DNA of 64,000 nt. Origin: Lytechinus pictus. Lineage: Eukaryota. The position numbers and the translations under genes were made by a program. Numbering within the stretch: the first letter of the stretch is position 1; each line of letters starts with the position of its first letter. The notes beneath the pieces are model-generated. The model was not told the origin of the DNA. It saw only the letters and a list, made by a program, of their open reading frames with translations, and made no database searches. This document shows, piece after piece, positions 21,201 to 62,600 of this stretch. The stretch lies in contig NC_087251.1 in NCBI RefSeq assembly GCF_037042905.1, positions 8,804,001-8,868,000 of the forward strand, read 5' to 3'.

Positions 21201-24200
21201 TCCACCATTTATGACCTAAAATATATTAATATTAATCAAAATTGTATATTATTGTGCATATTTTCTTCTAATTAACAACTCATAATATTACTGTAAATCA
21301 CTTTGATCCTGAGGATGTGACTGTCCCTGCAAGTTCCCTCATTCTCTTGATTGTTAAGTTCATTATATTGTGTCAATATCAATGACTTCAATCAGCTATT
21401 ATATTTGTTTTTTCTAAATTCTGTTTGTATTTTATGTTATTTTATTGAGACACTGAAAGTACATTAAAACTGTACAATTAGGCCTACTGCTCCTTCAATA
21501 TGCTCCCTTTTATTTTTCTCTTCCTCTTTGTTTTTATCACTACCATTATCACCATTGCACGTTCGTGTAAAATTTGTGTACAATTATATAATAATTTATG
21601 TTATTGCAAATATATATAATCATATATATAATACTAACACATCTACGCTATTGCAATATTGTATAAGGGGACTGTGCAAAATATTTAATGTTACAATTAT
21701 TTCACTTGCAAAAATGGGCAATACAAGTAATATCAAATTCCCCATATTTAGGTCACTCTCATCCCTTATTCTGTAAATAAGAGATTTTGAATCTTTATGG
21801 TACACACCATAAAATACACCATGAAACCATGTTTTATGTTTTCTTACTACATGTGTTATTTTATAACAAATTGCAGCATAAAAAATATTATACAAGAAAC
21901 TCTGACAAACTATATGTTCCTTTTTACGATTTTAATTTCTCGAGAACAATCATAAGTCACAATGGACCACTTGTGTGGAACAATTTTCCCCCTAAATTAA
22001 ACAATGTCCTTCTCTTAATTCAATAGAAATGAAAATCACACCTTTTACATAAACATACTTCTTCTTGTTCTCAATGAATAAGCTTTTCTGTTACATTTAC
22101 ATATTCTATGTTTTTGTTTTGTATTTATTATTGTTATTTAATCTGATTTTTAATTATTTTGCTGATTTTGTTGATTTTGAAACCTTTGTTTCTTTCAACA
22201 GAAAGTTGATTGGAAAATCTTTGGTAATGAATTTTAATCAGGGAATAACCATGATAGGCCAATGGCTTTTTGCTATTCCCTCACATCCTATTCCTCACCG
22301 TATGCAAATTTTGAAGAAATTTGACAATTGTCATTGCTGTTTTACTTTATTATTATTTCATTGGTTCCATCTCTATGTACTGTATCTTATTTGTTTTTTA
22401 CAGATGAGGATATAAATGAATTTGAGACATCATAACCACATTGTTATATCATCACCATTATCACTGTGATAATCACAGTACTTACCATTGCTAATATGAA
22501 CAGAGTTCTAAAAATATGCCATCTAGGAATCGTTGACAAAATCAGAATTATACCAAATTACGATACTTTTAATCAAAACAAATCCACACACCTTATCATG
22601 ACTTTGAAGCACAAAGCATGCTGGGATACATTCTCCTTCCAAATCAGCAAGCAAATTACTGTCTGTTACATCAGCCCTTTTGAAATGAAATTATAAATGA
22701 GTACTTTCTGTCATGTCAGGAGCGAAAAATGTATATTTCTTAATAATATGAAATCCTCACTTGTATTTCACATAGATACTGAAATAAATTATGGTTTATA
22801 GTAAATTATGAGAGTATTCCATGGTACAATCATGTGATTATAGTGTGCACAACAATGAACATGTTCAATCAATTAAACACATTCCATAAGCTTTCTTTAA
22901 GTTATTCCCAAATATTCATATCACATCAAATATAGGGGAGCTACTGACAGACATGTAACAATTGTATGAAATTATGCAATTGCTGTGCAAGCACCCTATG
23001 CCACTTTCAATGTTGAATCTTTTGGTACCAAGTTTAATAATAAAATACAATAAAATAGTTATAAAAATAGAAATCTATCTCATTAAATTCAATACTGAAA
23101 CGTAGCAAAAACCTTAACATGTGGTCTGTCTGTGTAAAATGTATCATCGGACTGTTCGTGGCTAATATCTATAAAAAAAAAGGGGGGGGGGGTTCCATAG
23201 AAAATTGATCTGAAAAAGCCAAGTTAGAATAGAGAGAGTGAAAACTTAAATGCTATGATGGACTTTCACCAAACCTACTTTAATTTGATTCTCACATTTT
23301 TCTTCTTTATCAAACAAACTTTAAATTCATGAACCAACAAGAACTCACCTATTAACGACAGTAAATCCTAAGTTTCCCTGGTACTCATCTTTCACATCTA
23401 ATATGAGAGATAAAGCTCGTTCATGATTGGTTGGATCAGTTATAGCATAGAGAGAAGGTACACCATGTTCCTTGTACATATTTGATTGCCCTCCCTCAGG
23501 AACGTCATCCTGAAAAGAATACACAGAACAGTTGGTTAATATAAAGACTTGTGTAACAAATTACTGCAGAATGCATCAAAAATGATTAATTCAAGTAATT
23601 TCATTTCATATTAGAAGTGTCTGTGAAATGGTGACAAGACATTTGCTCCTGCGACAATTGCTCCAGGCTTAATTTTGTAAAGGGTTAGGGTTGCAATAGG
23701 GTTTTATGTTAGGTTTAGGGTAGGGTAGAGTGTTAAACCCAGGGTTGAAGTTGGCCATTCGAGTAGTGTGTGGAATTTAGAGTGGAGCAATTGTTGCTGG
23801 AGCAAATGTAATGGAATCATGTGAAATACCTCAAAGAACTAGAATTACTATGATAATAGCTGATAAAGAATAACTGAAAACAATAGACATATTATCAACC
23901 CAGTATGATATAGAAATAAGAAATCAATGTAAAACTGATGTTATATCTGCAGAGGAAGAACAAAGTGAAGACGTACAGTAAAAAGAATTTCTGTTAAAAA
24001 GCTTGGGGTCCAATTTAAAAACAAATATTCAAACCAATGCCATTCACCAAAGTAATTTATCTACTTTACTGCTCACGAACCAGAGCAAGAAAGAGCTAAC
24101 AAGTATAAAGGCACCTTATTAAAAGTATATGCTGCATCTCATCACAGATAATGTCGGAAAGACAGTAAATAAAAGTAAAAAGTCAGTTACCCAAATTAAA

Positions 24201-27200
24201 AGAAATATGAAACTTTAAATCAATGCTTGCTTGCTTTAAGTATTGTGTTCTACAGTGTACCTAAAAATGAGCTTCATATTGAAAAACATACCAAGTCAGG
24301 TAGTACTAGATTTAGCATAAGGATAGAGAGACTCTCTAGTGTGACTGGTCCATGATACTTGACCCACATACAATCCTGATGTGACTGTGCCTTGCTGCAT
24401 TGGCTTATGCCAACAACTGGGTCTGGTAACTGATCCAAGTTAGGTTTACTGCAAACAGGTCCAAATAACAATGATTAGACAAGTGATAAGTATGATCATG
24501 AAGCTACTCAAATGAGACTGGTATAATAAAATTCCAGGTCAAATTTGTTATCATGTCCAGCTGCTATTAAATCCACCATACCAAGTGAGTATTGTAGAAA
24601 TTCACAATTTTCATGTCCAATTTCAACGGAATAAATGCTATTGCTATCGATTCATATGAAAAACTTTATAAGCCAACAAGAGTTTGACCTGTGCCATTGC
24701 ATCAGTGCAGTGAAATTGATCAGATGCTTTTACTCTAACATGATAAATCAACAGAAAAACTGAGTGTTCTAAAGGTTTCATAATTCTGTGTTAAAGAAAT
24801 TCTGAACCTTTGCTTCACTTTTTAATTTTTGATATCCAAGGTACAGTAGTATTTTTGCAAATGAAAAGCCTTTTCGTACAAGAGCAGATGAAGATCATTG
24901 GCTGTAATCCTGAATATTTCTTTTATATCACTAAGATGAACACGATTATTCATGTTATTTCAAAATATGCCTGTTATCTTACATAAAGTATACCAAATTA
25001 CCAATTAATCAAGTACCTATTCAATTGAAAAAAGAAAGGTCATATGCAAACAGTTGCTTTAAAATAATTAAAAAATGGCTTATTTGAGGGCTAATTGGCA
25101 TATTAAGAAATATAGCCCAATTCCATATATCAATGACAATAAAACATTTTACACCCTAAAAAAAACATATTTGCTCCTCATATTCCAAATTAAAGATAGA
25201 GATGGAAATGATCAAATTATGACTCGGGGAAAACAACCAAATATTTTTCAAGTTATTAAAAGATTATCAGATTTTAAGGAAGTCTTTCAATACTGGAAAC
25301 TCTTGATGTTATGCCCAGTTGCAGGACTTTTTTCCCCAATGCACCCAAATATTGGTAAAATAAAAAAAAAAAAGCCTAAAAAATGTTGTGTACATTTAGG
25401 TTTTAATCTCTTACACCAGTGAATGAAATTCTTCACAAAAACACACACAAAAAAAACATGAAATTCTTTCTTACTTTTCTTGTTCTTCTTCCAAAAGATA
25501 TCTATTAGTTGTTAGAATGAAATCATACTTGTGTCTGTAAGCAAAGGCCACCTCCATGAATGCTCGATCAGCTGAAATATTAAAATAAAAAAATAACAAC
25601 AGCTAAACATCAAACAGGTAATACAGGCTCATACTACCTGTTTGATGTTTTTTAACCAAGTAAATTTTTGACAAAGTGACATAAGAGAAGCTCTCCATCA
25701 CTAACTATCTTCAAATCTAAATAAAAAGCCTGTCTCTATAGTTAGAAAGTGCATCTGAATATAATCATATTAGAGCTGCACTTTACAAATTTATGTTTAG
25801 TAAATACGGAACTGTCTCTCAGAATAATTAATTAATCAGATTACAGAAATCATAAATACTAGGACTCACAAAGTATATATTATGCATAGCTCCAAAATGA
25901 TATTTTTAATTTCCTTTATGATCATTACTCATTAGCCATCCTTGACCACTGACTTATCATATGATGTATTGTAGTTTTTCTACATTGATACTCTAAAAGC
26001 AGTATTATATCTTTTGAGGTACAGGTACACTTCAAGAGTGACAACATAAAGCTAAATATAAAGTACAAGTTTTGATTTATTATTATGATTTAAATACCTG
26101 CAGTTCCAACAGCTGGGACATAACCCATGATAATGTCCCTCTTTCCCTTCCACTTATCTTGCTTCTCAAGAAGATTGGATGGTTCTCCAATGATGGGCAC
26201 ATCAATCAGGAGAACAAGGCTGTGTTAAAAGAATTATCAAAGCATTTCAGAGATATCAACTTTTTTTGTAAATTTCAAATGAAATTTTATCATCTTATAC
26301 AATAAATGTATATCTCATCACTTGCAGAGTTTGTAGGGTACAATACATAGGGGAAACCAAGACCACACTCAAGAAACGATTCTACGGGCACAGATCCACC
26401 GTCAACACAGCAAAGCTGGACACTCCAGTTGGCCGCCATTTTAACCTCCCCAACCACTCCATCACTGACATGATGCTACAGGGCATCGAATCTTTAGGTA
26501 CCCGTCCTGACTCAGTCCGTACTAGCAGGGAGAAGCTCTGGATGAGACGACTTCGCACCACCCAACCTCATGGCCTGAACATCCAAGAGGGGAACGACTG
26601 ATTTTCTTTCCTATCCACTTTCAATTTATATATACATATAATTTTTCCCCTCAGCTCTTTTGAATAGTTACATTATAGTTTCTTACTCTACTTTCCTCCC
26701 ATATCTCATACAAGCTCAGCTCCAATTTTTCCTTCCTTATTCAGGCGATATAATAATTATTATATATATATATATATTTGTTTTTTCTCCACTCACCTCT
26801 TTTAGATTTACCACATTTGCTTATTTACATGTATACTATGGTTTCTTCATAATACACCCCCTCTCTTCTATATTTGCTTTTACCTTTTTAGGCAATTTGC
26901 TTCCTCTTTTTCACATATACATGTTTTTTTTTTCTTTCCTGCTATATAGTCTTATGTTTTTTCCCGTCACACCTAGCGGATTACCATATCAGTTACACCA
27001 TATGTGTATATATTTATATATTTTTTCATATACATTTCTTTTTTGGATATATTTATATACATATCACTTGTAGATACATATTTACACTTACCTTCTTCTC
27101 TTAGTTTGTTTAATGCTTTATCATATATACTTATATGTCTTTTGCACATTATCAGTTGTTCCCCATTCTTTTTCTTCCCTTTTTTCCCCCCACTCTTATG

Positions 27201-39995: not shown

Positions 39996-40459
39996 AATTA
40001 ATCAATCAGTCAATCAATCCATCAATCAATCAATCAATTAGTCAATCAATTAATATATACATTAAATTTTATTGATTAATCAGTTATGCAGTCAATCAAT
40101 ATTAATTAATCAATTAATTTATCATTCAATAAAACAGGCAACCAAACAATCAGCCAGTCATTCAATAACTCAAACAATTAACCAGCAATCACTCAAACAA
40201 TCAATCATCCAGTTTATCTTTTTCATTCAGAGTTTCCATAAACATAAATAAAGTAAGCTAGCAAGTAAGTAATCAGTGGATCAACCAATCANNNNNNNNN
40301 NNNNNNNNNNNNNNNNNNNNNNNNNNNNNNNNNNNNNNNNNNNNNNNNNNNNNNNNNNNNNNNNNNNNNNNNNNNNNNNNNNNNNNNNNNNNNNNNNNNN
40401 NNNNNNNNNNNNNNNNNNNNNNNNNNNNNNNNNNNNNNNNNNNNNNNNTCAATCAATCA
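39996..40459. repeat. Degenerate (AATC)n microsatellite spanning an assembly gap
   Basis: AATC units on both sides of the N run at 40292-40448 (157 N). Confidence 0.85.
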
Positions 40460-41261: not shown

Positions 41262-42235
41262 TTAGACATACAGTGTGAATTTTAACAATTTTTGTGTTAT
41301 AAAGGTAAATATCTTCAGACAATACTGTTGGATATAGGGTTATCTAATCACTTTTGACATATAAAACAAAATAATTAATAATCCACTTCTGGTTACACTC
41401 GTGTTACAGAGAACATGATGGAAATATGTATATATATTTTTGTTGCATAATTTAAAGCACTACATACACTTACAAGGTAATAGTTTAAGTCCACGAAAGA
41501 CCGAAACAAATTGATCGTAAATAGACAATAATTGATTTTAATGAATATATACACTTGCATATCTTTAGAATCTTCTTTATTTTTCCGAATAGCTAGCCTC
41601 ATATAGCACAAGAATTTAGCCAAATTTAACAAAGTGTTACTTTTGGAATAAGCTACCTTACACTTTTCAATTCGATTCAACCGATCGGGAGAGGTATAGG
41701 TTTAATCTCCTCCACTTGGGCTCCCTGGAAGAAAAAGAGTGAGTGATGGATCTATGGGGGTACTGGTGGTTTAGGACGCAGTCGCATCCCAGGTAAAAGA
41801 GATGAACCCGAAATGGCATTTGGGAGTGATGTTTTTTTTTTTTTTTTTGGGGGGGGGGGGTTGTCTTTTTTTCTGGAGACCAAACGCCCTTCATTTTAGG
41901 TGATGACTGTTGGGTGTGGGGAGGGGGGGGGGGGCTTGTCAAATATTCAGAAAATTCCTGACTCTGCGCATGTCAAACCAAATGGTGTCAAACCCCCTCT
42001 TATAGCAGAAAGGTAAATCTGCTACTAGTAGTGTATACTGATATCGAAAATAGTATCGTTCGTACTGAGGTAAGAGAACAACAACTTGCTGTAAATACAT
42101 GTACTTCGTTAGATTACAATGGGAAGGTAAAACCTAGGAGTTGCCAATAAAAAACAGACGTGTGATATACAGCTCCTAAGATTCGACTATAATAATGCGA
42201 ATGATGTATAATGATGTAGGCAATCAAATGTTATC

Positions 42236-45200
42236 TTATGGAGTAAAGCCGCCGATGACTCGATAGTGTGGATCACGCATCATGCCAATTAAAGCTTGCA
42301 GAACCTGGGCGACATTCTCGGCTGATGAGATACAAGAAATGGAAACAAACGGAGATGAAAAAGTTAGTTAAGAGAAAGGACATATTGAAAATTTGTATTA
42401 AAAACAGTGCTATTATGCTTGTCTGCAGGGGCGGATCAAGGATTTTCCAGGGGGGTGCATTTTTGTCCAGAAATATTTGACAAAAAAAACCCAACAAAAC
42501 AAAACAACAACAAAACGGCATTCACTTGCATATGAACGACATTCTCCGCTAAAACAATATTTTCCCGGGGAATATTTTACGGCTCGATTATAATGACAGT
42601 TCTGTTATAATTTTATGCCTGTTTGATTTTTCTTCGAATCAACATTTCGTTGGGGTGACTTGCCCTTAAAAAACACATCTATTTTGATGAAATTCAATGA
42701 TATAAAACACCTGATCTGTTATTACCTCTGTATTGGCACGCAACTCCTATGAATCCAATGTTACACTGACAGAAAGCTCCAATGCCATCCACAGAACAAT
42801 GACCTTGTCTGTTACTACATGTATTGGTTCCAGCATAGAGCTCATCACATAGGAATGCTACACGATCTCCTTCATCTCCACCAATAGCACCTCCATCTGG
42901 GAGAAAACAAATGTTAAAAATATTGCAAACAAAATATACGCAAAAACCACATAAAATGACCGGGGTACAGGGATGGGGGGGGGGGGGTGGTCAATGGAGG
43001 TAAACAATATCCAGTATCAGGGGCGGATCCAGCATTTTTCAAAGGGGGCCGGGGGCACATTTTCCCGAGGAAAATTGGACATGCAAAAAAAATGGTCCTC
43101 ATTTATGTACGAACGACATATTCCGATTAAAAATACATGCTGTGACTTTCAAATGCGGGACCTATTGTGTAAGTACGCCATATTTACATTAAAAAAATGA
43201 TAAAGGCTCTCAAAAGGGGGGCACGGGCCGAATTTGCCTCCCCCTCAATCCGCCACTGTCCAGTGTGGTCTAAACATATGCGAGAAGGTAAAAAATAATA
43301 TAAACTAAAATCATACAGGCCAATAGGATTAAAAAAAAAAAAAAATAACTCACCACAAAACAAATAAACCTTGCAGTCCTCGTTTCATAAAATCTCAGTG
43401 CAAATGTGTGAAATGTTGGTACATACATTTTTTAGTTGAAAAGGGCACGATCATAACCATTTCAAATTTTTACTAGTTTGTTAAATGCATCAAATCCAAA
43501 TCCACCCGGCTCAATAACTTATGAACAGTACTAAAAACGGATGAGAGAAAAAGATATCGTGGGAAAAGTTGTAATTTATTTTCTCGATCTATATGTATGA
43601 TCAATAAATAAAAAATAATAGCTAAATGGCAAAATGATTAAATGAATAGATATCATATATTAACGATTGGATAAATAAATAAAAAACATAAATAACAAAT
43701 GCTGAATACATTAATAAAGAAAAATTCAATGTATTCACAAACAAGTAAATACAAACAGAATAATAAGAATATTTGCTCGCAAGACTGGGAGAAAATACAT
43801 TTGCTGAATTTTAAGAGTACTATTGATAGCCGCCTCAGATAATTTATTTCAAGATCTTCCATAAGACAATAGCCCTTAATGCATTTTTATTTAAAATCAA
43901 GAGAAAATATTCCCCAAACTGTTCATTCTGTAAAAGAGACCCTGAAACAATTGTACATATTTTTTTGATTGTCCGGTTGTTAACATTGTGTGGGACGATC
44001 TTTTATCTATAATAAACCAAAAACAACGAATATAATCATTTCCTCTTTTGTAAAGATATTTGGTATTCAAGGTGATAATTTTTTAACATTCATTTTCCTT
44101 GCTTTCAAATACTATGTTCACTTTTGAAAATTTAATTAAAAAACCCCCGATATTGTGAAATTCAAAGCTCGTATCAAAGGCATTAAGGATATTGAATATT
44201 TTTGGGCGTTTACCTGTACATAAAAAAAACACGGAGATTTTGATATTTAATTTGTCTTATGTATCTGTCTCTACAAACTTATACATACTTAAGTGCTGCT
44301 CTGTTTAATCATGTAAATAGCTTGTTGATTTGTTTGATTTATATTGTAATTTATACTTTGATCAATAAAGATTGAAAGAACTCTCTATTCATAAAACTCC
44401 TACCTTGTGTAGAGTTAGGACGTTCTGTTCTCATCACCTCGTCATCGTCACCATCATCGTCGCCGTCGTTGTCTTGGTCTACAGTCGTTTCTTCGTTCAT
44501 TGCTTGGGTTGTGACCTCTGGTCGTCTGGTTTCTTCTGTCACTTGTGCAACATCGTCATCATCTTCACTATCACCGTCGTCGTTATTGCCGTCGTCATCG
44601 ACCAGGGGGCTCCTCTCTCCTATGAAATACACGGGTGTATATAGTACAGTCAAACTTATTTTTTACAAGCCCCAATGGTGTCGGGAAAAAAATATTGACA
44701 TAAGTGATTTGGCAGGACTTCGCGGTTATTTATTTTTCTTTGTTCCCTTTTTATTCATTTATTTTACAGTTCGATATAAGGGCTGAAAAAAACATTTACC
44801 AGAAATGTTTGATATTTTTGAAATTCGCATTTTGAAGAAATTCCTGAGCGACTTCTGTAATAAAATAGTCTGGAATTGTACAATCAGAAGAATTAAGAAA
44901 GAGATTAACTGTCCTTGAGAAATGACATGCTGTCTCAGTAATTAATCTTTTCATTTCATCATGAAGTTTACACACGGAGAGTAATCAGATCAAGGTATAC
45001 AAAATGATGATAAAGAACAAGATTGACCATGAAATGAAGAAAGAGAGAGAGAAAATAAAAAAAAATACAGGAGTGAGGATGAGAGGAGGGAGGGTGGAGT
45101 GTTTGGCATGGGTGACAAAGGGATGGAGCAGGCCTGGCATGGAGTCAGGTGGGGGTGGTGGTGGTGGGAGGGGGATGGAAGAATGGGGGTGCATGGGAGG

Positions 45201-48200
45201 GTGTAGATTTACCTTGTGGTGTATTGATGGCATCCTGACAGAGATAACCACCCCATCCTTCGTAACACATACAATGAGGTCCGATGTTGTCTACGCGACA
45301 GTAACCATGGTTACTGCAATTATTCGTGCGAATCATCATGACTCCACATGTTTCACGCTTCGTACGTTTACCTGTTGAAATAATGATTACATGGATATAA
45401 ACAGTAATTATTTTTTACTATAATCTCGTATGTCACAAAAAGTAAGAAAATAAGACCCTTTTTACGAGCATAATAGTCGAAACGTGTTACAGCATGCGGT
45501 GGATAATAATTTGAAGAATGTAAGCATATTATAATAATAATATGCATTTATATAGCGCAAAACTATTTCTATATATTCTATTGCGCTGCAAGAGCTTCCT
45601 AGGTGCTGTACGTACTATTGGAATAGATAGGTTTTTAATTTTAACTTGAAATTATGTAAACTTGTTGAATTCCTTATGTCGAGTGGAAGTTTGTTCTACA
45701 GTCGTGGGGCTGACATCAGAAATGACATATCTCCTAGTGTTGCTTTAGTCTTGTGTGGGGGTACTTGCAATGTGAGTGTATGTGAGCTACGAAGGTAATG
45801 GTCATGAGATCGGGATTTCAATTTCAAGAGATCCGAGATATAACTTGGGGCCTAATCTTAAATGTGATTCTTTGCCGGCAGCGGTGTAACAGGGGTCGGT
45901 GGCCAGGGGGGGGGGGGGGACAAGAGCCAAACATTTCCCGGTGATATCATGGTATGAACAGGCGTAGTGGTGTAATGAGGCGACTATTTTAAGGCCAGAT
46001 ATTGCGTATCGGGCAGAATTTATCTTTAAAAAAAGTTGCGAGCGAGTGAGCAAAAATGTTGACCTTTTTTATACAAAAATCCAATTTTGTGATAGATATT
46101 GACATGATATCCAGAGAATAATATATTTCACTCTTCTCTCTATAGATTACTTTTTTTGTGGTCTGTACGCCACTGTGAACAGGATTCTTTGCGGCATTAG
46201 CGTGAAGAGTAAAAAAAAAAAAAGAGGGGCGCAGTATAGCACATGTGCTAAAAAGCGAGCGAAGCGAGCGAGAAAAAAATCACCTTTTCATGAGAATCTA
46301 ACTTTGAGCTATTTTTTGACATTATATTCAGTAAATAAAATCATATCCTACACTTTTCCTTTGCTTTTCTTTTTTGTTCTTGTCTGTAAAAGTTTTGGGG
46401 TCATGGCCCAACCCTTCCATACGCAGTGCTGTACGGTTGGGGTCCGGGGCGGAGCCCCCGGAACTTCTTGATATCAAAGCCATTTAAACCTCTCAGACTG
46501 CCGCTATTTTAATCAAATCGCGGGCATATATAGAATATAGCTTTTACACAACACATTTATTCAACCCAGTTGCGTAATGAACCAAATATTTTGAGGGGGC
46601 AAAACATAGCAATGATGGAAAAATTTGTAAATAGTCGCCAGCGTGCAAAGCGAGCTGGAAAAAAAATAGCCTAATGAAATCAAATTCTAATTATGTGATA
46701 GATTTTCCCATTATATTCAGCAAATAACACATTTCATTGTTTCCATTCATTTCATTATACGTTGTCTCCTATAATTTCTTTTATTTATTCTTGGATGTGG
46801 AACCAAGATCCCCCCGCCCCTGTATGCCAATGATTGAACGTGATTGAGCGGGGGGGGGGGGGGGCGTTATAGAGCCATTTGAAGGTTATAAATGAAGAGC
46901 CCCTACTGCGTGGGGTCTGGGACAAAGGTAGCTTATTTCATAAAATTTAGCAAGCTTATAGCAGAATGTTGTATGCAGTCCATCTTTCTTCCCGCTCTTT
47001 AATTTCAATCATCGGCAGCCCGGTTGTGTTATTTTTTTTTTCTTGTCCCTTTTCTTTGTTTTCCACTTAAGCTTTTGACTAATTCCATTCTACCTTCGAT
47101 TCCCGCTATTGTTTGTCAATTTGTCATCTTTTGATTTATTTCCCATTATGCTATGGCATACATATAGGCCTATTTCAGAATTTGTTCTTTCTCAAATGTT
47201 CTTCTTTCTTACATTTTCCCGCTTTCTTTCCTTTTCCATTAAAAAAAGTTTTCTTCGTTTTCTTTTCGCTTTTCCCTTTCCTCGTCCTCCTTTCCTTTTC
47301 CCATTTTCTTCCCCTTTCCCTTTTCTTCCCCTTTCCCTTTCCCTTTTCTTCTCCCTCCTTTTTTTTTTCTTTTTCCCGTTTTTCTTTTATTTTCCCGGTG
47401 AAATCCGCCAGGGGGGGGGCAGCTTGCCCCCCCCTGCCCCCGCCTGTTACGCCACTGTTTGCCAGACAGGTTACCAGTGTAATTCTCTCAATAGTGGGGT
47501 GACAGGAGAGAATTTGGGAAGACGACATATTAAACGTGCACATGCATGTGTTTTGCACTCTCTGCAGTTTGCTTATCATTCGAATAATCTACATACTAAA
47601 ATCATTTTCAAAAGGTAAAATATGACATGCGGCATCATCGGAAATCAGTTTGACCCTATCTAGCCCCCCCCCCCTTGAGATTTTGGCTGTCGACTGCACG
47701 ATCGCGCCTAAAATTGGCACGCAAGATGTCTGGGACAAAATTTACAGAAATTTATTTCATGAAATCTAAGCATTTTTGTAACCATGAACAGGATGAGAAC
47801 AATAATTGATGCGAGCGCGAAATAAGCGCGAGCCAAATTTTTTGTGATTTTCTTACTTAAAACATGTATCATGCTTTACTTCAAATAGGGTATGGTATTT
47901 CATTTTGAAAAAGGCATTTTTTCCTACGGGAATTTAATACTTATGTTTTTTTTTTTGTTTTTTTTTGGGGGGGGGGGGGGGGGGTAGTGTCCCTGCTCAC
48001 CCCGGTTCCGCCGCCCCTGTTGTGGTATTCTTAGCAAATGTACGTGAAAAAAATGCGATATCAGATATCATTCTCCTATGTATTAATTCTTTTTTTGGCA
48101 ATTTCTTATGTGCAATTTTGGGTCTGAAAAGCACTTACAAAATGTTGCGTAATTTCGGAACCGTGTACCCGGGCGTCGAAAATGTGGCCTCAAATTTGCC

Positions 48201-48865
48201 CCCCCCCCCCAAAAAAAAAAAAAAAAAAAAAAAAAATCGCGTGGCAAAGATATTGCCCGAAATGTTTTTATACCTTCGAGACCCCCTGCCTAGATAGGGG
48301 GATAATGAAGAGATAATCGGTACATTTTCACTCCTGTGAAATAAATAAAATGATGCGAGAGAAAGTGCGAGGGGTGGAACATAAATCGCAATAATGGAAT
48401 CGATGTGCGTGCATGGGGGAGGGGGGTGGGGGTAAAATAAGTTAGTGTTATTTCGCAATATAACGAATCTGATTATTTATATTCCACCCCTTGCAATTTC
48501 TCTTGCATTTTTTTAACAAGTAATATTGTACCGATTATCACAGTTATAAAGTGCAGCATTCCCAGCAATACGAATTTATTTCGATTCTGTTCGAGGGTTA
48601 AAAATAATGATAATAATAATAATAATAATGATAATAATAATGATGATGATGATAATAATGGTAGTAATATGGTAATAATAATAGGTGATATTTATAATGC
48701 TCCATATCCACTCTGCGGAATGCAAATAAAAGAAAGTATATATAATATTATAAATCAAAGTAGGACTTCTTGACAATAAAAATGAAACTTACCTATTGAT
48801 GCTCCATGCACAGAAAACGAAGCAATCGTATAAAACGCCAAAAGGACACAACCAAATCGCACCAT
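42236..48865 (-). CDS. Secreted protein with two EGF-like domains and an acidic/Thr-rich linker, 5 exons, 234 aa
   Basis: Exons 48793-48865 (MVRFGCVLLAFYTIASFSVHGASI, signal peptide), 45213-45371 (GKRTKRETCGVMMIRTNNCSNHGYCRVDNIGPHCMCYEGWGGYLCQDAINTPQ), 44404-44619 (Asp/Glu/Thr-rich), 42726-42896 (..CDELYAGTNTCSNRQGHCSVDGIGAFCQCNIGFIGVACQYR), 42236-42321 (AENVAQVLQALIGMMRDPHYRVIGGFTP-stop). All introns GT-AG and phase 1; 705 nt in frame. The last exon is the least certain. Confidence 0.82.
43018..43258. mobile_element. hAT-type MITE (8-bp TSD TCCAGTRT)
   Basis: CAGGGGCGGAT..ATCCGCCACTG; TCCAGTAT / TCCAGTGT flanks; a related partial copy begins at about 42426. Confidence 0.78.
45525..45800 (-). 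mobile_element. L2-type LINE 3' end
   Basis: Minus strand YLRSSHTLTLQVPPHKTKATLGDMSFLMSAPRL*NKLPLDIRNSTSLHNFKLKLKTYLF, then a GCGCTATATAAATGCATATTATTATT tail. Confidence 0.78.
45879..47457. mobile_element. Composite hAT-type non-autonomous element (8-bp TSD TTTGCCRG)
   Basis: CAGCGGTGTAACAGG / CCTGTTACGCCACTG; flanks TTTGCCGG and TTTGCCAG; contains further TIR-like ends and a pyrimidine tract (source of spurious ORFs 47109-47618). Confidence 0.7.
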
Positions 48866-49086
48866 CTTTGTTTCTATCTTAACTTCAAGGAGGATTTAAA
48901 CAGTAAGTGTTTTCAGGAGGAGAGTTTGGAGAGAGACTGGCTCGATGATCTGATATGGCTTCTCCAGATTTCTTATTAGGATTCAGATGTAAACAAAAGA
49001 GGTTGGGGAGTCGGGTGCGGGGGCGGGGGGGGGGGGGATGGAGAGATCTTACGGGATGAGTTGGCTTCTTTTACCAACACAAGCAG

Positions 49087-49214
49087 GGCCCCGTTTCATA
49101 AAACTCGTTATAATAACAATTGACAATAATAGTTTAAAGCTACTAAAATCATTAATTTTGTTTGGCTGATAGAAGATTTGTCATAGAAATTGATATTATT
49201 TGTTATTATAACAA
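49087..49214. mobile_element. Small degenerate MITE upstream of the EGF gene
   Basis: CCGTTTCATAAAACTCGTTATAATAACAA / TTGTTATTATAACAAGTCTGTATAAAACGG inverted pair. Confidence 0.6.
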
Positions 49215-52200
49215 GTCTGTATAAAACGGAACCCATGCAGGGTGAATGTCCAATTGATATATATTTTATGTTGTTTTTTATTATTGGTTATCATTACTAT
49301 CCAAACCAGCAACCCCTAGAAATCGTTCCCAGGTCCCTGCATGTAGTAGTAGTAGTAGTTGCTGTTGTTGTACAGAGATTTCCTTGCTCATTAATCATGT
49401 GTTTTTACAAGTAATTAATTTCTTTCCGAAAAAAGCCATACAAAATGATATATTTCAATTTTATTCCTGTCACACAAAAGAATATTTATACTGGAAACAA
49501 AAGGAATTGAACCCGAATTCATCATCAAATTATGACCTTAAATTCACCACAAAGTGTTCACTCAGGAAATATCAAAAGAAAAAAAAAACATAAGAAAATA
49601 AAATATTATCACCCTCCAAAAAGGTCTGAATATGATCCCCCCCTCTCTCTCTTTCGTGTTCTAGAATTATCTTTAGCACTGAAATAGTTTAGGCAACTGG
49701 GTGCGGGTTACCGTTATGTAACATTTGTAGACGCCAAACTCGAAACAAATCGTGCAAGAGACGTCAAACATTGATTCAGCAAATAATGCCAGCTTTTCCA
49801 CTTGAGATAAGAAACGTTTTAGGAGAAATTACAAACAAGAAAGTTAAATATCACTACCTAACAAACACAGACGATCCTTTTTAACACAAGACAAATGGGA
49901 GTTATCGCAATAATATTTCATTTTCAGTGATTAATTGCTTTATTCTCGCTCAGATAAATTATCAACAATGTTCTTTGTTTTGGTACACCGAACACCATAA
50001 CACTCCTTGCGTGATAATAGACTTTTGTTTATTGTTGGGCCAATAAGGGGAATGATTGTTTTCTTGGTAGGTTATGCTGTGTGATGTTCCATTGTAAACA
50101 ATATTTAAAGACTATTCCACTGTTCTCCAGTCAAAATATTACCTGTACCCAAGACCTGGTCCTGAAGAAATTATCATAAAAATTATTTATGGACATAGCA
50201 AAGACAATGAATTCTTGTTCACTCATGATATAAATGATTCATGGGGCTCCAAAAATCACGGAAGTCCCAAATGTGAACTCTGATTGGTTGAAAAACAAGT
50301 TGCATTAGATTGTTTGTCTTGTGTTTAATTGCAATTTCTTCTTCAACTTGCCCTTTAATTTAATTTAAAGGGTAAAAGTCTAGACACTAAGATAAAAGAC
50401 TGAAAACAAAGACATCTTGCATGTTTCATATTTTCATGTTGCTGCATGGCTACTTTTCATTACCTATCACTTCCAAATTGCTTCACTAAACTGAAAAGTT
50501 TGAATGTTTTATTGCAATTAATTAAAGTCAATTCAATTCAAAGTTATTCAACATACGTCATAAAAACACATTACAAAATTTATATAAGTATTACAAAAAG
50601 TGAGATAAATATGATAACTATAATAACAAAACAAAATGTATAAACATAATGAGAGTGTAAGGGGTAGCAGAAAGGAAGAGATTCCTTTTATAATCGTTAC
50701 CCCAACAAAATCCAAAAATTACAAGTGATATAATTATACACATAAAAAGCAAAGAGAATATTATACATATATGACAACAACAAAAAGTTATTATAAACAT
50801 AAGCAGAAGATCACAATGCCTAGATTATTTAAAATTTCAATTATTACTCAGTAATACATGATAGAAGGATCAAACAGAACATGGAAATGATCCAGAGCTT
50901 ATTTTTTAATATACTTTTAGACTTTTAAAAATAACAATTTAAAATATGACTACATTATTAGTAATAATTCTAACTGGATGGGAGGGTGTCATAATGAGGA
51001 AGATGGAGAATGTGGCATATAATTAGTGCTCAAAAGTTAGTTAACGCCACCAGAAAATGAACATATTTGTTCAAGTTCTGGCCTCTGTCATGTTTTAGAT
51101 ATTTAATTGTGAAGTCAGGTGATAAAATATTACATTCAATAAGGTTTCTATAGGCTCGCCGAACATTTTAGTTTTGTTGACTATACATTCAACACTCAGC
51201 ACGAAGGTGTGTATTTTGTGGTAAGGTTCACTAACTTTTGACAACAGCGGTACATATAAGTTGTGCGGGCTTATTATCAAAATGTGCCAGAAAACTACAT
51301 CAATTCAAAAATCTGTTTTTCGCCATGGACATCAGCCCTGCTGAAGATGCATTCGTCATATCGTTTACAAATTTGTCTTAAAAATTATTGTTGAACGAAT
51401 TTGGAAGAATTCTTCGGGAGTTCACTTGGATAAATTCACTTTCCAAGTAGCAGAATTATAACAAAGAGACTTATGAAGGATTGGAATTCACTGATACTAA
51501 ACGCAAATCAACTGAGTTGGTTTCTTAGCATACATCTTTGAATAACATTGTGATCTGTGACGCCCATCAATGCACACGTCACAAAACTTTTGTTACAAGT
51601 ATCGAGGGTCAGTTATATTCACGACTGCAAACTAGGGTGCCGAGTATTTTTACAGATTGAACTCTCCTTCAAGCTTTAAGAAGTAAAAATAGGGAGATAG
51701 CAACATCCCGTACCATGACGTGCAAGGTGAAACTGTCCGCTGACAGAAGAGATCTGATTCGAAAATAATGCGCCGATACTCACAAAAAAATAAGTTGTTT
51801 TTGCTTAATATAATTACATCTCACCACATTTTCCTCATTAAATGCCGACATATATTCCAAAATCTAATCAGATGAAATCATTTAGATTAACCTCGAACAC
51901 AACAGGAGATTAAGAAAAAAAAATGGGGAGAACGGGGAGGAGGAAAGATATAAACATTTGATATTAATGATAATCGTTATTCTGTAGTAAAAATATCACA
52001 TACATTCCTAAATGTTATGTTCACATTTTGTTTTTAAGTTTAAGTAGCGGCCATTATCAATATGATATGTATCATGATCAGATCACTTCTAGTTTTACCA
52101 TTGGACATTAACGATGAAGAAATTAAAGACCGGGTCTGGATATCAAGGGTCCCTACTCTCAAGTGACCTTGAGTCGGGCTTCCGTTGCTAAAGGACTCTT

Positions 52201-56611: not shown

Positions 56612-59600
56612 CTAGAGTTTTCCAGCCTTTTTCTTTGCGAACTCACTTCTTTCCTTACCAGCAACAGGCACTTCTCTCTCATCCCAAAGTGTGATACCAT
56701 CACAGGCACAGATCTTCTTTGTATTCTCAAATAATCCTGCTGATCTAGCTATCACACCACATGAAATTCTATGGAGAGACAAGAAGATGGATTGATACAG
56801 ATTATATGATGTTAAGAGTACAATGAAGAGAAGATAGGTGAAAGAGGAAATGACATTCAGGAAAGAAATTATATGGAAGGTTCTGAGACAGAAATTTTTT
56901 TTTTATAAAGAAAGGTGAGGAAGGAAGAATGGAGAGAGATGAGATAGTGCAGGGAGATAGGATCAACAATGATAACAAACTGAAGTTAACAATAATTACA
57001 ACATCAAATAATGATAATTTTCCAACCTTCACTTTACTAACCAGCTATCTTTAACATTTATCTATCAAGATCACATTTCCTGTGCTTGGTAAGTTTGGTT
57101 TCTCATTAAATCATACACATGTCAATCAATATCACATGGTGACACAGACCACTTCTCTGTCTTCTTCTGGAAGTCCATTATAGGTTTCACTGGATTTTTT
57201 TTATTGTTAATAGATTCATTGCTTGCATTAGCTAGTCAGTCCATCTTTCCACTTGAAATATCTATATAAAGTGCCTTAAATGTCTACTACTGCTACTGCT
57301 GTTGCTACTACTACTACAACTACTACTACAACTACCACCACTACCACCACCACTACCGCAACAACTACTACTTCTACCACTACCACTACTACTACTACCA
57401 CTACCACCACCACTACCACTACTACCATACTACTACTACTACTACCACTACCACTACTACCACTACTACCACGTCCACTACTACTACTACCAATACTACT
57501 ACTACTACCACTACCACTACTACTACCACTACCACCACTACCACTACTACTACTACCACTACCAGTACCACCACCACCACCACTAGCACCACCAACACCA
57601 CCACTATCATTATTATTATTACTAAATTAAGTGAAATCTCTATCAACAGTAGGTAAAACTATAACATGATTCATGATCTCCCCATGATTCTTCAAATTAT
57701 TAAAAACTGGTGTCAATGACTGTTTTTGGTTGATTATATGTCTATCTTTTTAAACAAATATAATATTAGTATTGTAAGAAATATTGGTAGAAACAATGCA
57801 TTGTAAGATGCTATCAAATTGAGGGGGTGGTGATGGTTGTGAGGTGGAGAACCTTTATTCATAATAATAATAATAATGCACAGGCTTTTTCCATGATAAA
57901 GAACGTACCCAATACCAAATTTAGCTCCAATATCTGTGGTGACACCAGACTTTTCTCCAACGACCATGGATCGACCAATAACATCCCAAACCTGAAAAAT
58001 ATCAATACATGAATAAGGACACAATTGAGAATTAGACAGGGGATATTAAACAGGATGAATCGAAATGAATGACAAGAGAGATATAAAGATGAAAGGAAGG
58101 TTAATACCAAGGAAGGAAAAAAGATGATCAAGAATACCACAGTAACATATTTTATTTTGATGTTAACAAATATTTCCATCCCCAAAATGCCATGACATTC
58201 AGAATTTACTTAAGCCAGGCACATATCACATGATCCATTGCAATCTAATATTTAAATGAATTATGATAGCATTTAACATCCCAGTATATAAAGTCTTAAA
58301 GATCAAACTTCATAATAGTGGCATGAATATTGAAATACAAATTCCAGTCTCTTTTGAGCCTCCCTGTAGGAATAAAAGCAAATAAATTTCCAGTTTGCAA
58401 AGACGTTTACATCAGCTGCGACTTGAAGTTAATTTGGATTTGATTCCAACCACAAGGCTTGCTGCAAAGCAGACGTCTGATTATAGTATTCCATGAATTA
58501 TGACAAACTGCCAATAAAATAATTTTACTTCTTGTGAATTTCATGTTTAATGCAAATTGTAATTTATTTTATTGTGCGAGATTCCATAAAGACTAATTTG
58601 AAAGGGTAAAATGAAGGTAATTGAGACCTAGTTGTTTCCTGTCACTTTTTCTTATGATTTCAAGTTTGGATACCATTCGTGCTATAAAATTCTCCTCTTT
58701 TCAAATACTGGATTGTGTTAAAAGTAGAAGGCATCATCCCATGCTTGTTGCATTCATGAAATAATTGGAGATATTTACGTCATGTTTCTTTGAGTAGAAT
58801 AATCTAAATTTCTAACATTGACATTAGTAAGTCCATGTACTAAGTATCATATTCCTTTGATTATACCTCATGGATTTCTAAACTACAATTAGTCAAACTG
58901 TTAGACTACATCTATTGTACATTGTATAGAGGGACTGAAAGGTTTGATTACACAAACATCCTTTTAGGCATTGCTGCCCTCTTTGGTCAAATATGGTAAA
59001 ACTTGATAGTGAGAATTCAATAGGCTATAATAAACAGTGGGCATGCCACACACTAAGACTAAATCAAAGCTTTAATTGATATATTATATTGTGTGAGTCA
59101 TCATGGAAGTGGAATAAAACAGAAATCTTCCTGATGACCAATAAAAATATTGATATGTTTCCCAACATGCTCAAATAGATTACCGTTCGGGACAATTTGC
59201 AAGGGCCACAATCACTTATTAATTGCCACTAATTTGCTATTATCCAAGCCACAATATCACTAACAGATTTTTGAGATATTATATTTTTGTTTAAATATCA
59301 TAATTAAAATGGAAATTTTCCATTTTGAATGTCCATTGCATGTACTTTGTGTGTTCATTGTTCAATACTATATCATTTCATCTTCAATTCCCCTTTTTTG
59401 TACCTTGAGTTGATCATTTTCCATTCTGAATGTGGATCTGCCATTGTCTTCTGCAACAATCTCACCAAGATATCCTGTTGCCTAAACAAGAGTAAAATAC
59501 AGAGAATAATGAAAATATTGCCAACTTGCACCCCATACACTGTGTTCATAGTGAAGTTAATCAAGTCTTGACAGAATAATACTCTGAAAAAAAAAGGACA

Positions 59601-62600
59601 GATATGATGTTTATACCTCGGTCACATTTGCTCTATGGCGAGTCTAAAACAGCAGTTTAAACATTTTTGTACCAGTTAAATATAGGTGGTTTGAATAAAA
59701 ATATAAAAATAAATTTTTATATTTTTATATTTATATGGTTTGAATAAAAATATAAAAATAAAACGGCTGTTTTCGGCTCGCCGTAGAGCAAATGTGACCA
59801 AGGTATTAATGACAAACTTGTTCGTTTTTTTTTATCAATGTGAGATCTGCCTCTCAAACTATGCAAGCCCGGGGGGGGGGGGGGGGGGTACTCACGAAAT
59901 AAGGCATACAGAGATGTGCCGCTGGAATGGGTCGCTTTTTGGGAAGAAATCCCTAAACATGGGGTATGGTTTTATGCTGGAAAATCCATAAACATGCCCC
60001 CAATTTTTAGATAATGGCCTTAAACATGGTCCATATTCTCCTCTAACTTTGGGTGATAACCTTTTTTTTGCTTGTCAAATTTTAATAGATCCCTAATAAT
60101 GGGTACCGTTTTAGCCAAAATGATCCGTAAATATGGGTATGGGTTTTGAACCATCAGCTGCACACCCCGTCCAAACTAAATCTAAGTACCCCCCCCCCCC
60201 CAGGCAAGCTCCACAAAATGCAGATAGACAATTAAAATGTATGATTAATAAGAGAAGTACTTCATATATTTCTTTGCTAAACCTTAAAGCCTCTTTGCTC
60301 AAGAATACAGGGTATAGATATACAATTTGTAATTAACACATCATATAACTATTCTCACCTTTTGTTCTGCAGCCTTCTCTCCATGAAGTATACCTCTTGC
60401 ATCAAATATGTTGCCACAACTGAAAGAATAACAATACAAAAATAAAGGACTCAGAATGCATGAGAACTTTAAATCAAATCAGGTAAGATTGACTAATTTT
60501 AGTAAATATACTAAAAAATATATTAGACAATTACACAGTGATAGAAGGATAAGGTTTTTTTGTTTGAGGGCAATCTCATTGATCTGGTGGTAAGTAAATA
60601 ATGATTCAATTTGCATGAGAAAGTGGACACTTAAATTCATTTATAATTGCTTGAACAACTTTAATACATCTTTAGGGTAATATCTTTTTTACTGATCTAT
60701 CTTTATTTATTCATTTAAATAAGGCATTCATGAATTTCTTGCTGATCATTATATCATCAACAAAAAAGGGTTCACTCACCAGACATATTCTCTCTCCTGA
60801 GCTTCCATTATCTATCAAAATTACAAAATTTTGGTATTTCCAACAAAGCAGTTATTTCAAGGTAGCTCAAAAATGATTACTTTCCTTTCTCATATACCTG
60901 TTTCTTGCTTTTCAATTCTAACTTAACCTCTTTCATTTTGATTCATCTTCAACTTCTCTTCATTCCACCCTCCAAATGGTCCTTTACAGGACTAAACACA
61001 TGTTGTAAGTCTCCTCTCCGTAATCTGTATAACCATGTAAACTTGCAAAGATCTAAAATTAATATGAATTGTAGAGTGTAATCTTTCATTTTGGTTGCTG
61101 ACCTTGCACACCCCTCAGAGATGTCTCCATATTGATGGATGCGGAGAGGATGTTTGCCTGGTGATAGACCATCAATAGTCCCATCAATGATACAAGTCTC
61201 CTGAGCTACCTGAAGTAATCTAACCACTCCTCGGGCAGACTCTCCTGTCTCTAGCAAAGCTACAGCTGCTCCAAGGTGTTTACCTGAAGGAAGAGGTGTA
61301 GAGGTGTTGTGGCTCAGTGGATAAGTCTCCTGACTTTGAACCACAGGGGCTGGGGTTCGAATCACACTGCAGCACTCGCATCTTTTGGCAAGGCATTTAT
61401 CTGCATTTGCCGCTCTCCATCCAGGTGTAGTAAATGGGTACCTGGTAGGAAGAAATTCCTTGAATGCCATCCGATCAGAGTAGCCATGCTAAAGCCGAGG
61501 TAATAGCATGCAGTGCTTAAAAACATGTTATTAAGCGCTATATATTTGTTTGATATTATTATCATTATAATTAAATTTATCTATTATAGACAGAGGTACC
61601 TTGAAACCAGGCTATAGTGATTTTGAAGCACTCTATAACAGCACCCCCCCAAAAAAAAATAATACACACAAATTGATCTCATACACCCGCCAATTCACAC
61701 ACTTAATGCATTTATAAAATTGAGATGCCTCGTGCCTGACTGTAACTGATTTCTTTCAAACTGTATATTATCCTATTTTAATAGTCAGAATGCGAGAGGA
61801 CATTTAATGAGATTAAGCTGGGCAAGCTATAATGTTCATCTGACAAGCAATATCAATGAAAGTCACTTCTTCAAACACATTTAGTGAAACAGCACAGAAG
61901 AATGACGGTGCTTAGCAAACTTTGCTAATAAATATCTAAGCACATTTTCAATGACTGATGTCAGAATCACCAAAATTGACTGGATTGACCAAAATACATT
62001 GTGCATTAAGTTTTTTTTACCAAGATATTGTTTTCCTTCAGCAGTGGATTATAAAACCTGTCACTTGCGAAAAACAATTCTTTAAATCAAGCAGTAAAAC
62101 TTGAATCAAGGCACTGTTACACTAAAGTTGTCAGCACTGATAAATTGTTGTTCTCTGACTATTGCCAATCCAAACCAAGGATTTTACTGGCATTTAGTCA
62201 GAGATGACAACTTTCATGAGTATACACTTTCATGAATAACCAATCTGCTCTTTAACTTACCTGTGACATTTGACCCTTGACCCTTCAAGACAGCTCTACG
62301 TCCTGTTGACTCCAAGAGTGCAGTCACTCTGCTGGAAGGAAGCAGAGTAGTAACAATCACCTGCTCCTTAGAGAGATTGATATCAACCCCCTGGATACCT
62401 GTTACAAAGAATTATTTCAATTAAAGTTAAAGCAATTCACCAAAGAACACAGTTATAAAAAAAAACGTGTTCTCTCTTTGACAATAAAAACAGTTCAGTT
62501 GCACTACTGGCAAACTTTTCTTAAGAATTACTTCCAAATGAGAGAGGCAATAAAAGGGTTCATGAATCAATCAAAAGCATTCATGATATCCAGCAAGATA

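Follow-up and report, generated by a model that had tools for sequence, protein, structure and literature searches.

A 64,000-nucleotide stretch of the Lytechinus pictus genome (NCBI RefSeq assembly GCF_037042905.1, contig NC_087251.1, forward-strand positions 8,804,001 to 8,868,000; hereafter the window, whose numbering is used throughout) contains, on the minus strand between positions 42236 and 48865, a five-exon gene whose product carries two EGF modules. The gene is LOC129266045. In the explanation that we favour, at a probability of roughly 0.6, it is an apparently single-copy, constrained gene for a soluble extracellular protein that would be trimmed by a convertase, would act as an intact binding factor and belongs to an echinoderm family.

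The initial annotation of this locus, made from the DNA letters, proposed five phase-1 exons that splice into a 234-residue open reading frame (ORF) encoding a signal peptide, the basic stretch KRTKR, two EGF modules of given cysteine spacing separated by a 72-residue linker, and a tail with no transmembrane (TM) segment. We reassembled the minus-strand exons by script (48793-48865, 45213-45371, 44404-44619, 42726-42896 and 42236-42321) and recovered that model exactly, so the observation is confirmed. Every intron is GT..AG, every junction is in phase 1, and the spliced coding sequence of 705 nt gives 234 residues followed by TAA; another in-frame TAA lies 33 nt 5' of the ATG. By an exhaustive phmmer search, for which the EGF1 exon was the query, the spliced product was found to be letter-for-letter XP_054759901.2, ‘uncharacterized protein LOC129266045 [Lytechinus pictus]’, 234 residues long. 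The gene is therefore already annotated, as are its orthologues in L. variegatus and Strongylocentrotus purpuratus, and the description of it as a hidden gene does not hold.

The features of the protein follow the exons. Exon 1 (48793-48865) begins with the ATG at 48865, encodes a putative signal peptide (residues 1 to ~21) with the h-region FGCVLLAFYTIASF and a likely cleavage after VHG, and ends in phase 1. The N-terminus that it encodes is identical in XP_054759901.2, and a homologous exon is present in L. variegatus and S. purpuratus. Exon 2 (45213-45371) carries K-R-T-K-R (45355-45369), EGF1 (C33-C69, 45238-45348) and then AINTPQ; the R-T-K-R at residues 27-30 stands two residues ahead of Cys33. 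Exon 3 (44404-44619) is the 72-residue acidic, Thr-containing linker, with 28 Asp and Glu residues, a conserved block DEVMRTERPxST and no Pfam match. Exon 4 (42726-42896) encodes EGF2 (C166-C203, 42736-42849), and exon 5 (42236-42321) a 28-residue tail, AENVAQVLQALIGMMRDPHYRVIGGFTP, closed by the TAA at 42236-42238, below which the 3' untranslated region (UTR) is collinear. The cysteine spacing is 9/5/8/1/8 in EGF1 and 9/6/8/1/8 in EGF2, and the two modules, whose mutual likeness had been remarked on from the sequence, align with each other at a local score of 91. In a hydropathy scan the sole strongly hydrophobic 19-mer was the N-terminal signal peptide (Kyte-Doolittle 1.72); no TM segment was found past it, the next-ranked 19-mer outside the N-terminus (1.39) lying inside EGF2. 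The proposed layout, including the tail free of a TM segment, was thus reproduced by script and by hydropathy. The computed mature protein is ~22 kDa with a pI of ~4.

Expression was evaluated by mapping RNA-seq reads on 42200-48199, an interval that covers exons 2 to 5, with the junction of exons 1 and 2 outside it. One L. variegatus RNA sample (X15) gave ~90-113x depth on exons 2, 3, 4 and 5 (~113x on exon 2, ~105x on exon 3), and this depth was confined to the exons. Reads crossed all three joints of the interval: 147 at 42321>42726 (exons 4 and 5), 38 at 42896>44404 (exons 3 and 4) together with 24 carrying inserted species-specific letters, and 54 at 44618/9>45212/3 (exons 2 and 3) together with a further 37. 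All three joints are CT..AC when read on the plus strand and hence GT..AG in the sense of the gene. At 11 of 11 fixed differences checked the reads carried the L. variegatus base, so X15 documents the orthologue, which is abundantly and correctly spliced in this sample. No competing joint leaves the exon 4 donor in X15 reads, and no alternative 3' exon was seen within 42200-48199; coverage crosses the stop codon into the collinear 3'UTR. A further downstream exon adding a TM domain had been named as a finding that would overturn the model, and here the exon 4 donor joins solely exon 5, which carries the stop. The predicted junctions from exon 2 to exon 5 are thus borne out in L. variegatus reads, whereas three ribo-depleted L. 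pictus runs (X12-X14) are silent. Four small L. pictus runs from 2023 (X1-X4) hold 14-16% of the sampled words of the stretch, approximately what is expected from the exons and some repeats, and these may come from L. pictus RNA in which the two-EGF gene is expressed.

The L. variegatus orthologue, LOC121418016, is 237 residues long and 90% identical to the L. pictus protein, and that of S. purpuratus, LOC100888692 (XP_003723325.2, 233 residues), is 61% identical by BLASTP and 67% in a MAFFT alignment. Both loci have the same five exons in the same phases. In each of the three urchins the RefSeq name of the gene is ‘uncharacterized’, and the accessions of the gene and its orthologues have no occurrence in the searchable literature. 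As to a full-length ortholog that is already characterised, another finding that would have displaced the initial proposal, orthologues do exist in RefSeq, but they are named ‘uncharacterized’ and no functional description was found.

Ratios of nonsynonymous to synonymous substitution (dN/dS) were calculated by the Nei-Gojobori method. Between L. pictus and S. purpuratus the ratio is 0.21 overall, with 0.07 for EGF1, 0.16 for the linker, 0.32 for EGF2 and 0.25 for the tail; between L. pictus and L. variegatus it is 0.42 overall, with 0.08, 0.89, 0.42 and 0.10 for the same four segments. By these sequence comparisons the gene is under purifying selection. Invariant in the three urchins are R-x-K-R, all twelve EGF cysteines, DEVMRTERPxST and the tail pattern AENVAxVLxA...RDPHYRVIGG. 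The basic site, two residues before Cys1 of the first EGF, is RTKR in L. pictus and L. variegatus and RMKR in S. purpuratus; beyond urchins, the first EGF is preceded by RHKR in the brittle star Amphiura and by RQKR in an unlabelled 353-residue transcript. At the end of the tail (residues 226-234, 42239-42265, minus strand), the invariant Y-R-V-I-G-G resembles the R|IVGG activation site of trypsin-like proteases. We rejected RVIGG as such a site, as the gene is followed by TXNDC16 and not by protease exons, and the motif is missing from sea-star tails; the likeness is probably coincidence.

The two modules belong to an EGF subtype, C-x9-C-x5/6-C-x8-C-x-C-x8-C, with [LM][MY]xxx[ST]N.C in the nine-residue first loop followed by a Notch-like core. 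Every labelled member that an exhaustive search retrieved is from an echinoderm (urchins, a brittle star and sea stars), and the rest are unlabelled. The earlier suggestion of a lineage-restricted, possibly undescribed family agrees with this, and no functional description of a member was found. We built a family profile from an alignment of 20 EGF units, and over the whole unit (profile positions 2-41) L. pictus EGF1 scores 68.9 bits and EGF2 62.1 bits. Elsewhere in the 812-Mb genome no scored locus exceeds 36 bits, and nearly all such matches begin at profile position 7 or beyond. Among the 150 candidates that were scored there is thus no apparent paralogue, and the gene appears to be single-copy in L. 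pictus. A paralogue or an EGIP-like tandem gene (EGIP, exogastrula-inducing peptide) was sought in the same genome and rejected, the best non-self matches being generic EGFs; tandem EGF exons on one contig belong to a calcium-binding EGF (cbEGF) and C-type lectin gene that matches a retrieved protein.

Family members differ in the number of units that they carry. The Amphiura filiformis protein XP_072020329.1 (‘eyes shut homolog’) has three, with a classical EGF interleaved and R-H-K-R before the first. The unlabelled transcript, with R-Q-K-R in that position, ends in the tail VSTMIGVLRNLQTFLEE. Asterias rubens XP_033646832.1 (‘fibropellin-1-like’) has five near-identical units, proteins of Asterias amurensis and Acanthaster have three units after classical EGFs, and Patiria miniata XP_038069772.1 has a single one, between its signal peptide and its helix tail. 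Exon mapping gave one layout common to L. pictus, L. variegatus, S. purpuratus, Patiria and Asterias, in which the signal peptide, each EGF and the tail all have exons of their own. The family tails are predicted amphipathic helices with hydrophobic moments of 0.53-0.80 (0.53 in L. pictus). Judged by these shared sequence features, the two-EGF gene represents the echinoids in a family restricted to echinoderms, whose genes have a signal exon, one EGF per exon (from one to at least five) and a helix-tail exon. At the Asterias rubens locus (12950-15540) the five EGF-unit exons lie ~600 bp apart and are 94-100% identical in protein, which argues for recent tandem exon duplication or concerted evolution. 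Isoforms with four and with five units are present in A. amurensis.

As to domain class, both modules have six cysteines in EGF order, and EGF1 scores above the Pfam gathering cut-off for PF00008 (23.5-24 bits against 21.5), while the Pfam EGF matches for EGF2 fall below the cut-off at 12.6-15.2 bits. The best 60 of 86 profile matches in the PDB are all to Notch, factor X, teneurin and similar proteins and are aligned to the C2-C6 core; there is no growth factor among these 60. AlphaFold2 (AF2) models EGF1 alone with a predicted local distance difference test (pLDDT) score of 81.5, the long C1-C2 loop forming a short helix that is followed by the EGF hairpin. The full-length AF2 model has two hairpin cores, a disordered linker and a helix at residues 211-221 of the tail. 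A Foldseek search of the PDB with the EGF1 model returned EGF rows alone, all with E >0.6 and without discrimination between EGF classes, and protein atlas searches led to generic EGF, Delta or tenascin clusters at <0.92. Calcium-binding, O-fucose and O-glucose motifs were read against their general consensus. The cbEGF motif D/N-x-D/N-E/Q-C1 is absent (the residues ahead of C1 are KRET in EGF1 and VAFL in EGF2, with no PF07645 match), and by direct reading both EGFs are without the O-fucose consensus, having no Ser or Thr before C3, and without the O-glucose consensus.

We propose the following mechanism. The signal peptide would be removed, probably after VHG21, and a furin-type proprotein convertase would cut after R-T-K-R30, removing a nine-residue propeptide and leaving Glu31 two residues before Cys1. 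We infer this cut because R-x-K-R precedes Cys1 in the three urchins, in Amphiura and in the unlabelled transcript. The mature acidic protein of ~22 kDa would then display its two EGFs as binding modules, each knotted by disulfides, on a flexible poly-Asp/Glu/Thr tether. C-terminal amphipathic helices are granule-sorting signals in prohormone convertases and carboxypeptidase E, and by analogy with these the tail helix may be a docking or sorting element. The product would be an extracellular binding factor, soluble or matrix-associated and restricted to a tissue or stage, and not a growth factor of the EGFR type. Several observations weigh against this explanation. The three L. pictus runs have zero depth on exons 2 to 5. 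The junction of exons 1 and 2 is without read coverage, its placement coming from identical RefSeq models in three species. Signal-peptide and convertase cleavage are read from sequence rules and conservation, for a product known from DNA and RNA. Asteroid members of the family are without the R-x-K-R site. Finally, the mean pLDDT of the full-length model is 49, and the tail helix is predicted at low confidence.

Two alternatives retain the secreted, functional protein and give it another role. It might be an acidic protein of the extracellular matrix or of biomineral, the poly-Asp/Glu linker binding Ca2+ or calcite while the EGFs anchor it in skeleton, tooth, spine or another adult matrix. 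The composition of the linker and the mature pI are consistent with this, as is the all-or-none expression across samples, a pattern expected of tissue-specific secretory products, and sea-star relatives place long Gly/Ser/Asp-rich spacers between the same EGF modules. However, S. purpuratus has a deletion that removes part of the Asp-rich run, the strongest constraint falls on EGF1 and the tail and not on the acidic region, and the Patiria member has no acidic spacer at all, so that we consider a matrix role doubtful. The other alternative, which we regard as unlikely, is a polyprotein of the EGIP type, in which cuts on both sides of each EGF would release two diffusible morphogenetic peptides of ~50-60 residues. 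In sea urchins egip encodes small secreted EGF-related peptides and is a ciliary-band marker in Paracentrotus lividus (PMC9231221; PMC3009687). The L. pictus precursor, by hydropathy and by the joint of exons 4 and 5, is likewise soluble and free of a TM segment, its R-x-K-R before EGF1 is conserved, and single Arg residues in Lytechinus lie after EGF1 (GER), before EGF2 (RTER) and after EGF2 (QYR); the five near-identical EGF exons of the Asterias relative also look like a peptide polyprotein. Against it, processing sites flanking each EGF are not conserved, the N-terminal R-x-K-R being the one that is. The Arg after EGF1 and that after EGF2 are replaced in S. purpuratus (GES and QYE), and after the conserved RTER comes Pro, which is unfavourable at P1'; together these points favour the intact ~22-kDa protein. 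The linker, constrained and with its conserved block, is ill-suited to being a discarded spacer. The initial annotation's proposal of proteolytic processing is therefore supported at the site before EGF1, conserved in urchins, Amphiura and the unlabelled transcript, but not at the internal sites. No EGIP name occurs among the retrieved proteins whose names could be checked, in exhaustive and word-based searches with 24 proteins looked up by name, and a search with the S. purpuratus orthologue, itself ‘uncharacterized’ like the other two urchin genes, returned Lytechinus proteins only. EGIP orthology of LOC129266045, judged by names and not by comparison with an EGIP sequence, is thus unlikely. 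It is similarly improbable that the long-first-loop EGF genes as a whole are unrecognised echinoderm secreted signalling peptides, matured by convertase, sorted by the helix, multiplied in sea stars into exon-duplicated polyproteins and yielding in urchins one or two diffusible EGF peptides, with developmental or physiological activity such as has historically been attributed to EGIPs.

The remaining alternatives are far less probable than these. EGFR/ErbB ligands follow the consensus C-x7-C-x4-5-C-x10-13-C-x-C-x8-C with Arg before Cys6 (G-x-R-C), and a soluble ligand of this class would share with the urchin protein its secretion and EGF-fold modules; the weak Foldseek rows do include HB-EGF, TGF-alpha and epiregulin. 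Yet all of those rows have E >0.6, the cysteine spacing is 9/5-6/8/1/8 and not 7/4-5/10-13/1/8, and the residues before Cys6 read GYLC and GVAC in L. pictus and GHLC and GTAC in S. purpuratus. The PDB profile matches, with no growth factor among the best 60 of 86, and the lack of a type-I membrane anchor, the exon 4 donor joining only the stop-bearing exon 5, make such a ligand very improbable. The absence of these hallmarks (loop lengths, Arg before Cys6 and TM anchor), noted in part from the sequence at the outset, stands in all three respects. The least credible reading is that the locus is not functional, as a chance ORF or pseudogene. The lack of exon reads in the three L. pictus runs would fit it, but it is all but refuted: three species keep an intact ORF, every splice site and the synteny, the dN/dS ratio stands at 0.21, and the L. 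variegatus orthologue is abundantly spliced.

The introns and flanks of the gene hold further features. The 3' end of a dispersed repeat lies in intron 3 (44284-44380, plus strand); it is not part of the gene, and it accounts for the RNA past the exon 3 donor. This end (~97 nt) has at least 40 genomic copies at 92-99% identity. An isoform reading through the exon 3 donor, suggested by X15 coverage of ~66x on 44290-44403, was rejected on this ground and because the X15 continuation mismatches the L. variegatus intron, including at its loose end at 44290. The larger element (43800-44380, plus strand) is a dispersed retroelement-like fragment with an ORF fragment that has a Cys/His-rich C-terminus and AATAAA near 44366. 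The repeat is transcribed in L. variegatus RNA, and presence of the same insertion in intron 3 of that species implies that it predates the split of the two Lytechinus species. In intron 1, repeats at 48000-48199 and 45400-47500 are transcribed from both strands in all four RNA runs, and a first-look count gave ~2,400 candidate genomic copies of the stretch 48100-48200. An alternative 5' exon in these two intervals was rejected as repeat transcription, since every run covers them, even the runs with no reads on the exons. A search of 41500-49500 against Rfam gave no match. Downstream of the two-EGF gene, at ~10000-25000 on the minus strand, is a TXNDC16-like gene; the thioredoxin ORF at 19192-19461 fits the TXNDC16-like gene that comes next on the same strand in L. 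variegatus and S. purpuratus, so this neighbour is conserved. Another minus-strand neighbour (57900-61500) has a copper-chaperone/SOD-like exon at 60952-61470 (Sod_Cu 28.5 bits, barely below the cut-off). Positions 40292-40448 are 157 N, an assembly gap or masked sequence.

Since LOC129266045 was already in RefSeq, the gene model is no advance in itself. What is new is the grouping of the three urchin genes labelled ‘uncharacterized’ with several sea-star and brittle-star genes whose names are wrong (‘fibropellin-like’, ‘eyes shut homolog’, ‘notch-like’). The resulting family is restricted to echinoderms and is marked by a diagnostic EGF subtype, a helix tail and a conserved convertase site, and its copy number changes by exon duplication. 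We found no functional description of this family and no earlier account of it as such, and its importance is modest unless a signalling role is shown. If the family encodes signalling peptides, one of the major model systems of development would gain a lineage-specific class of ligand; as a matrix component, the product would be an ordinary tissue-specific secretory protein.

Among known systems, there is a close likeness to the genes of Asterias, Patiria and Amphiura, which share with the urchin gene the EGF subtype (C-x9-C..., [LM][MY]xxx[ST]N.C, NHG.C) and one EGF per exon; Asterias and Patiria also share the signal-peptide exon and the separate amphipathic-helix tail exon, and Amphiura the R-x-K-R before the first EGF. 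In contrast to the two units of urchins, Patiria has one, Asterias five that are near-identical and Amphiura three together with a classical EGF. The Amphiura model differs further in having no signal peptide and a short tail without the helix motif, no synteny with these relatives was found within 10 kb, and their database names derive from generic EGF similarity and not from characterisation. The EGIP precursor (egip of Anthocidaris crassispina and P. lividus) is also a secreted sea-urchin precursor with EGF modules, basic processing sites and no membrane anchor. The likeness is one of layout only, EGIP having been compared by name and description; the urchin gene has just two EGFs, and the flanking internal basic residues of L. 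pictus are not conserved in S. purpuratus. EGFR/ErbB ligands such as EGF, TGF-alpha, neuregulin and Spitz share an extracellular EGF fold and, in their biology, proteolytic maturation, whereas the urchin protein has the wrong loop lengths, no Arg before Cys6 and no TM anchor. Finally, the hEGF modules of Notch and factor X and the EGFs of tenascin and teneurin (PF00008, PF07974, PF23106), the source of the best PDB profile matches, have the same C2-C6 spacing of 5-6/8/1/8, G-aromatic-x-G before C6 and the EGF beta-hairpin fold. Their first loop has ~4-5 residues, whereas that of the urchin modules has nine and is predicted to be helical, and the calcium-binding, O-fucose and O-glucose motifs of Notch/factor X-type modules are missing from the urchin protein. 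The urchin protein is soluble and has two modules, and is not a long repeat array or a receptor.

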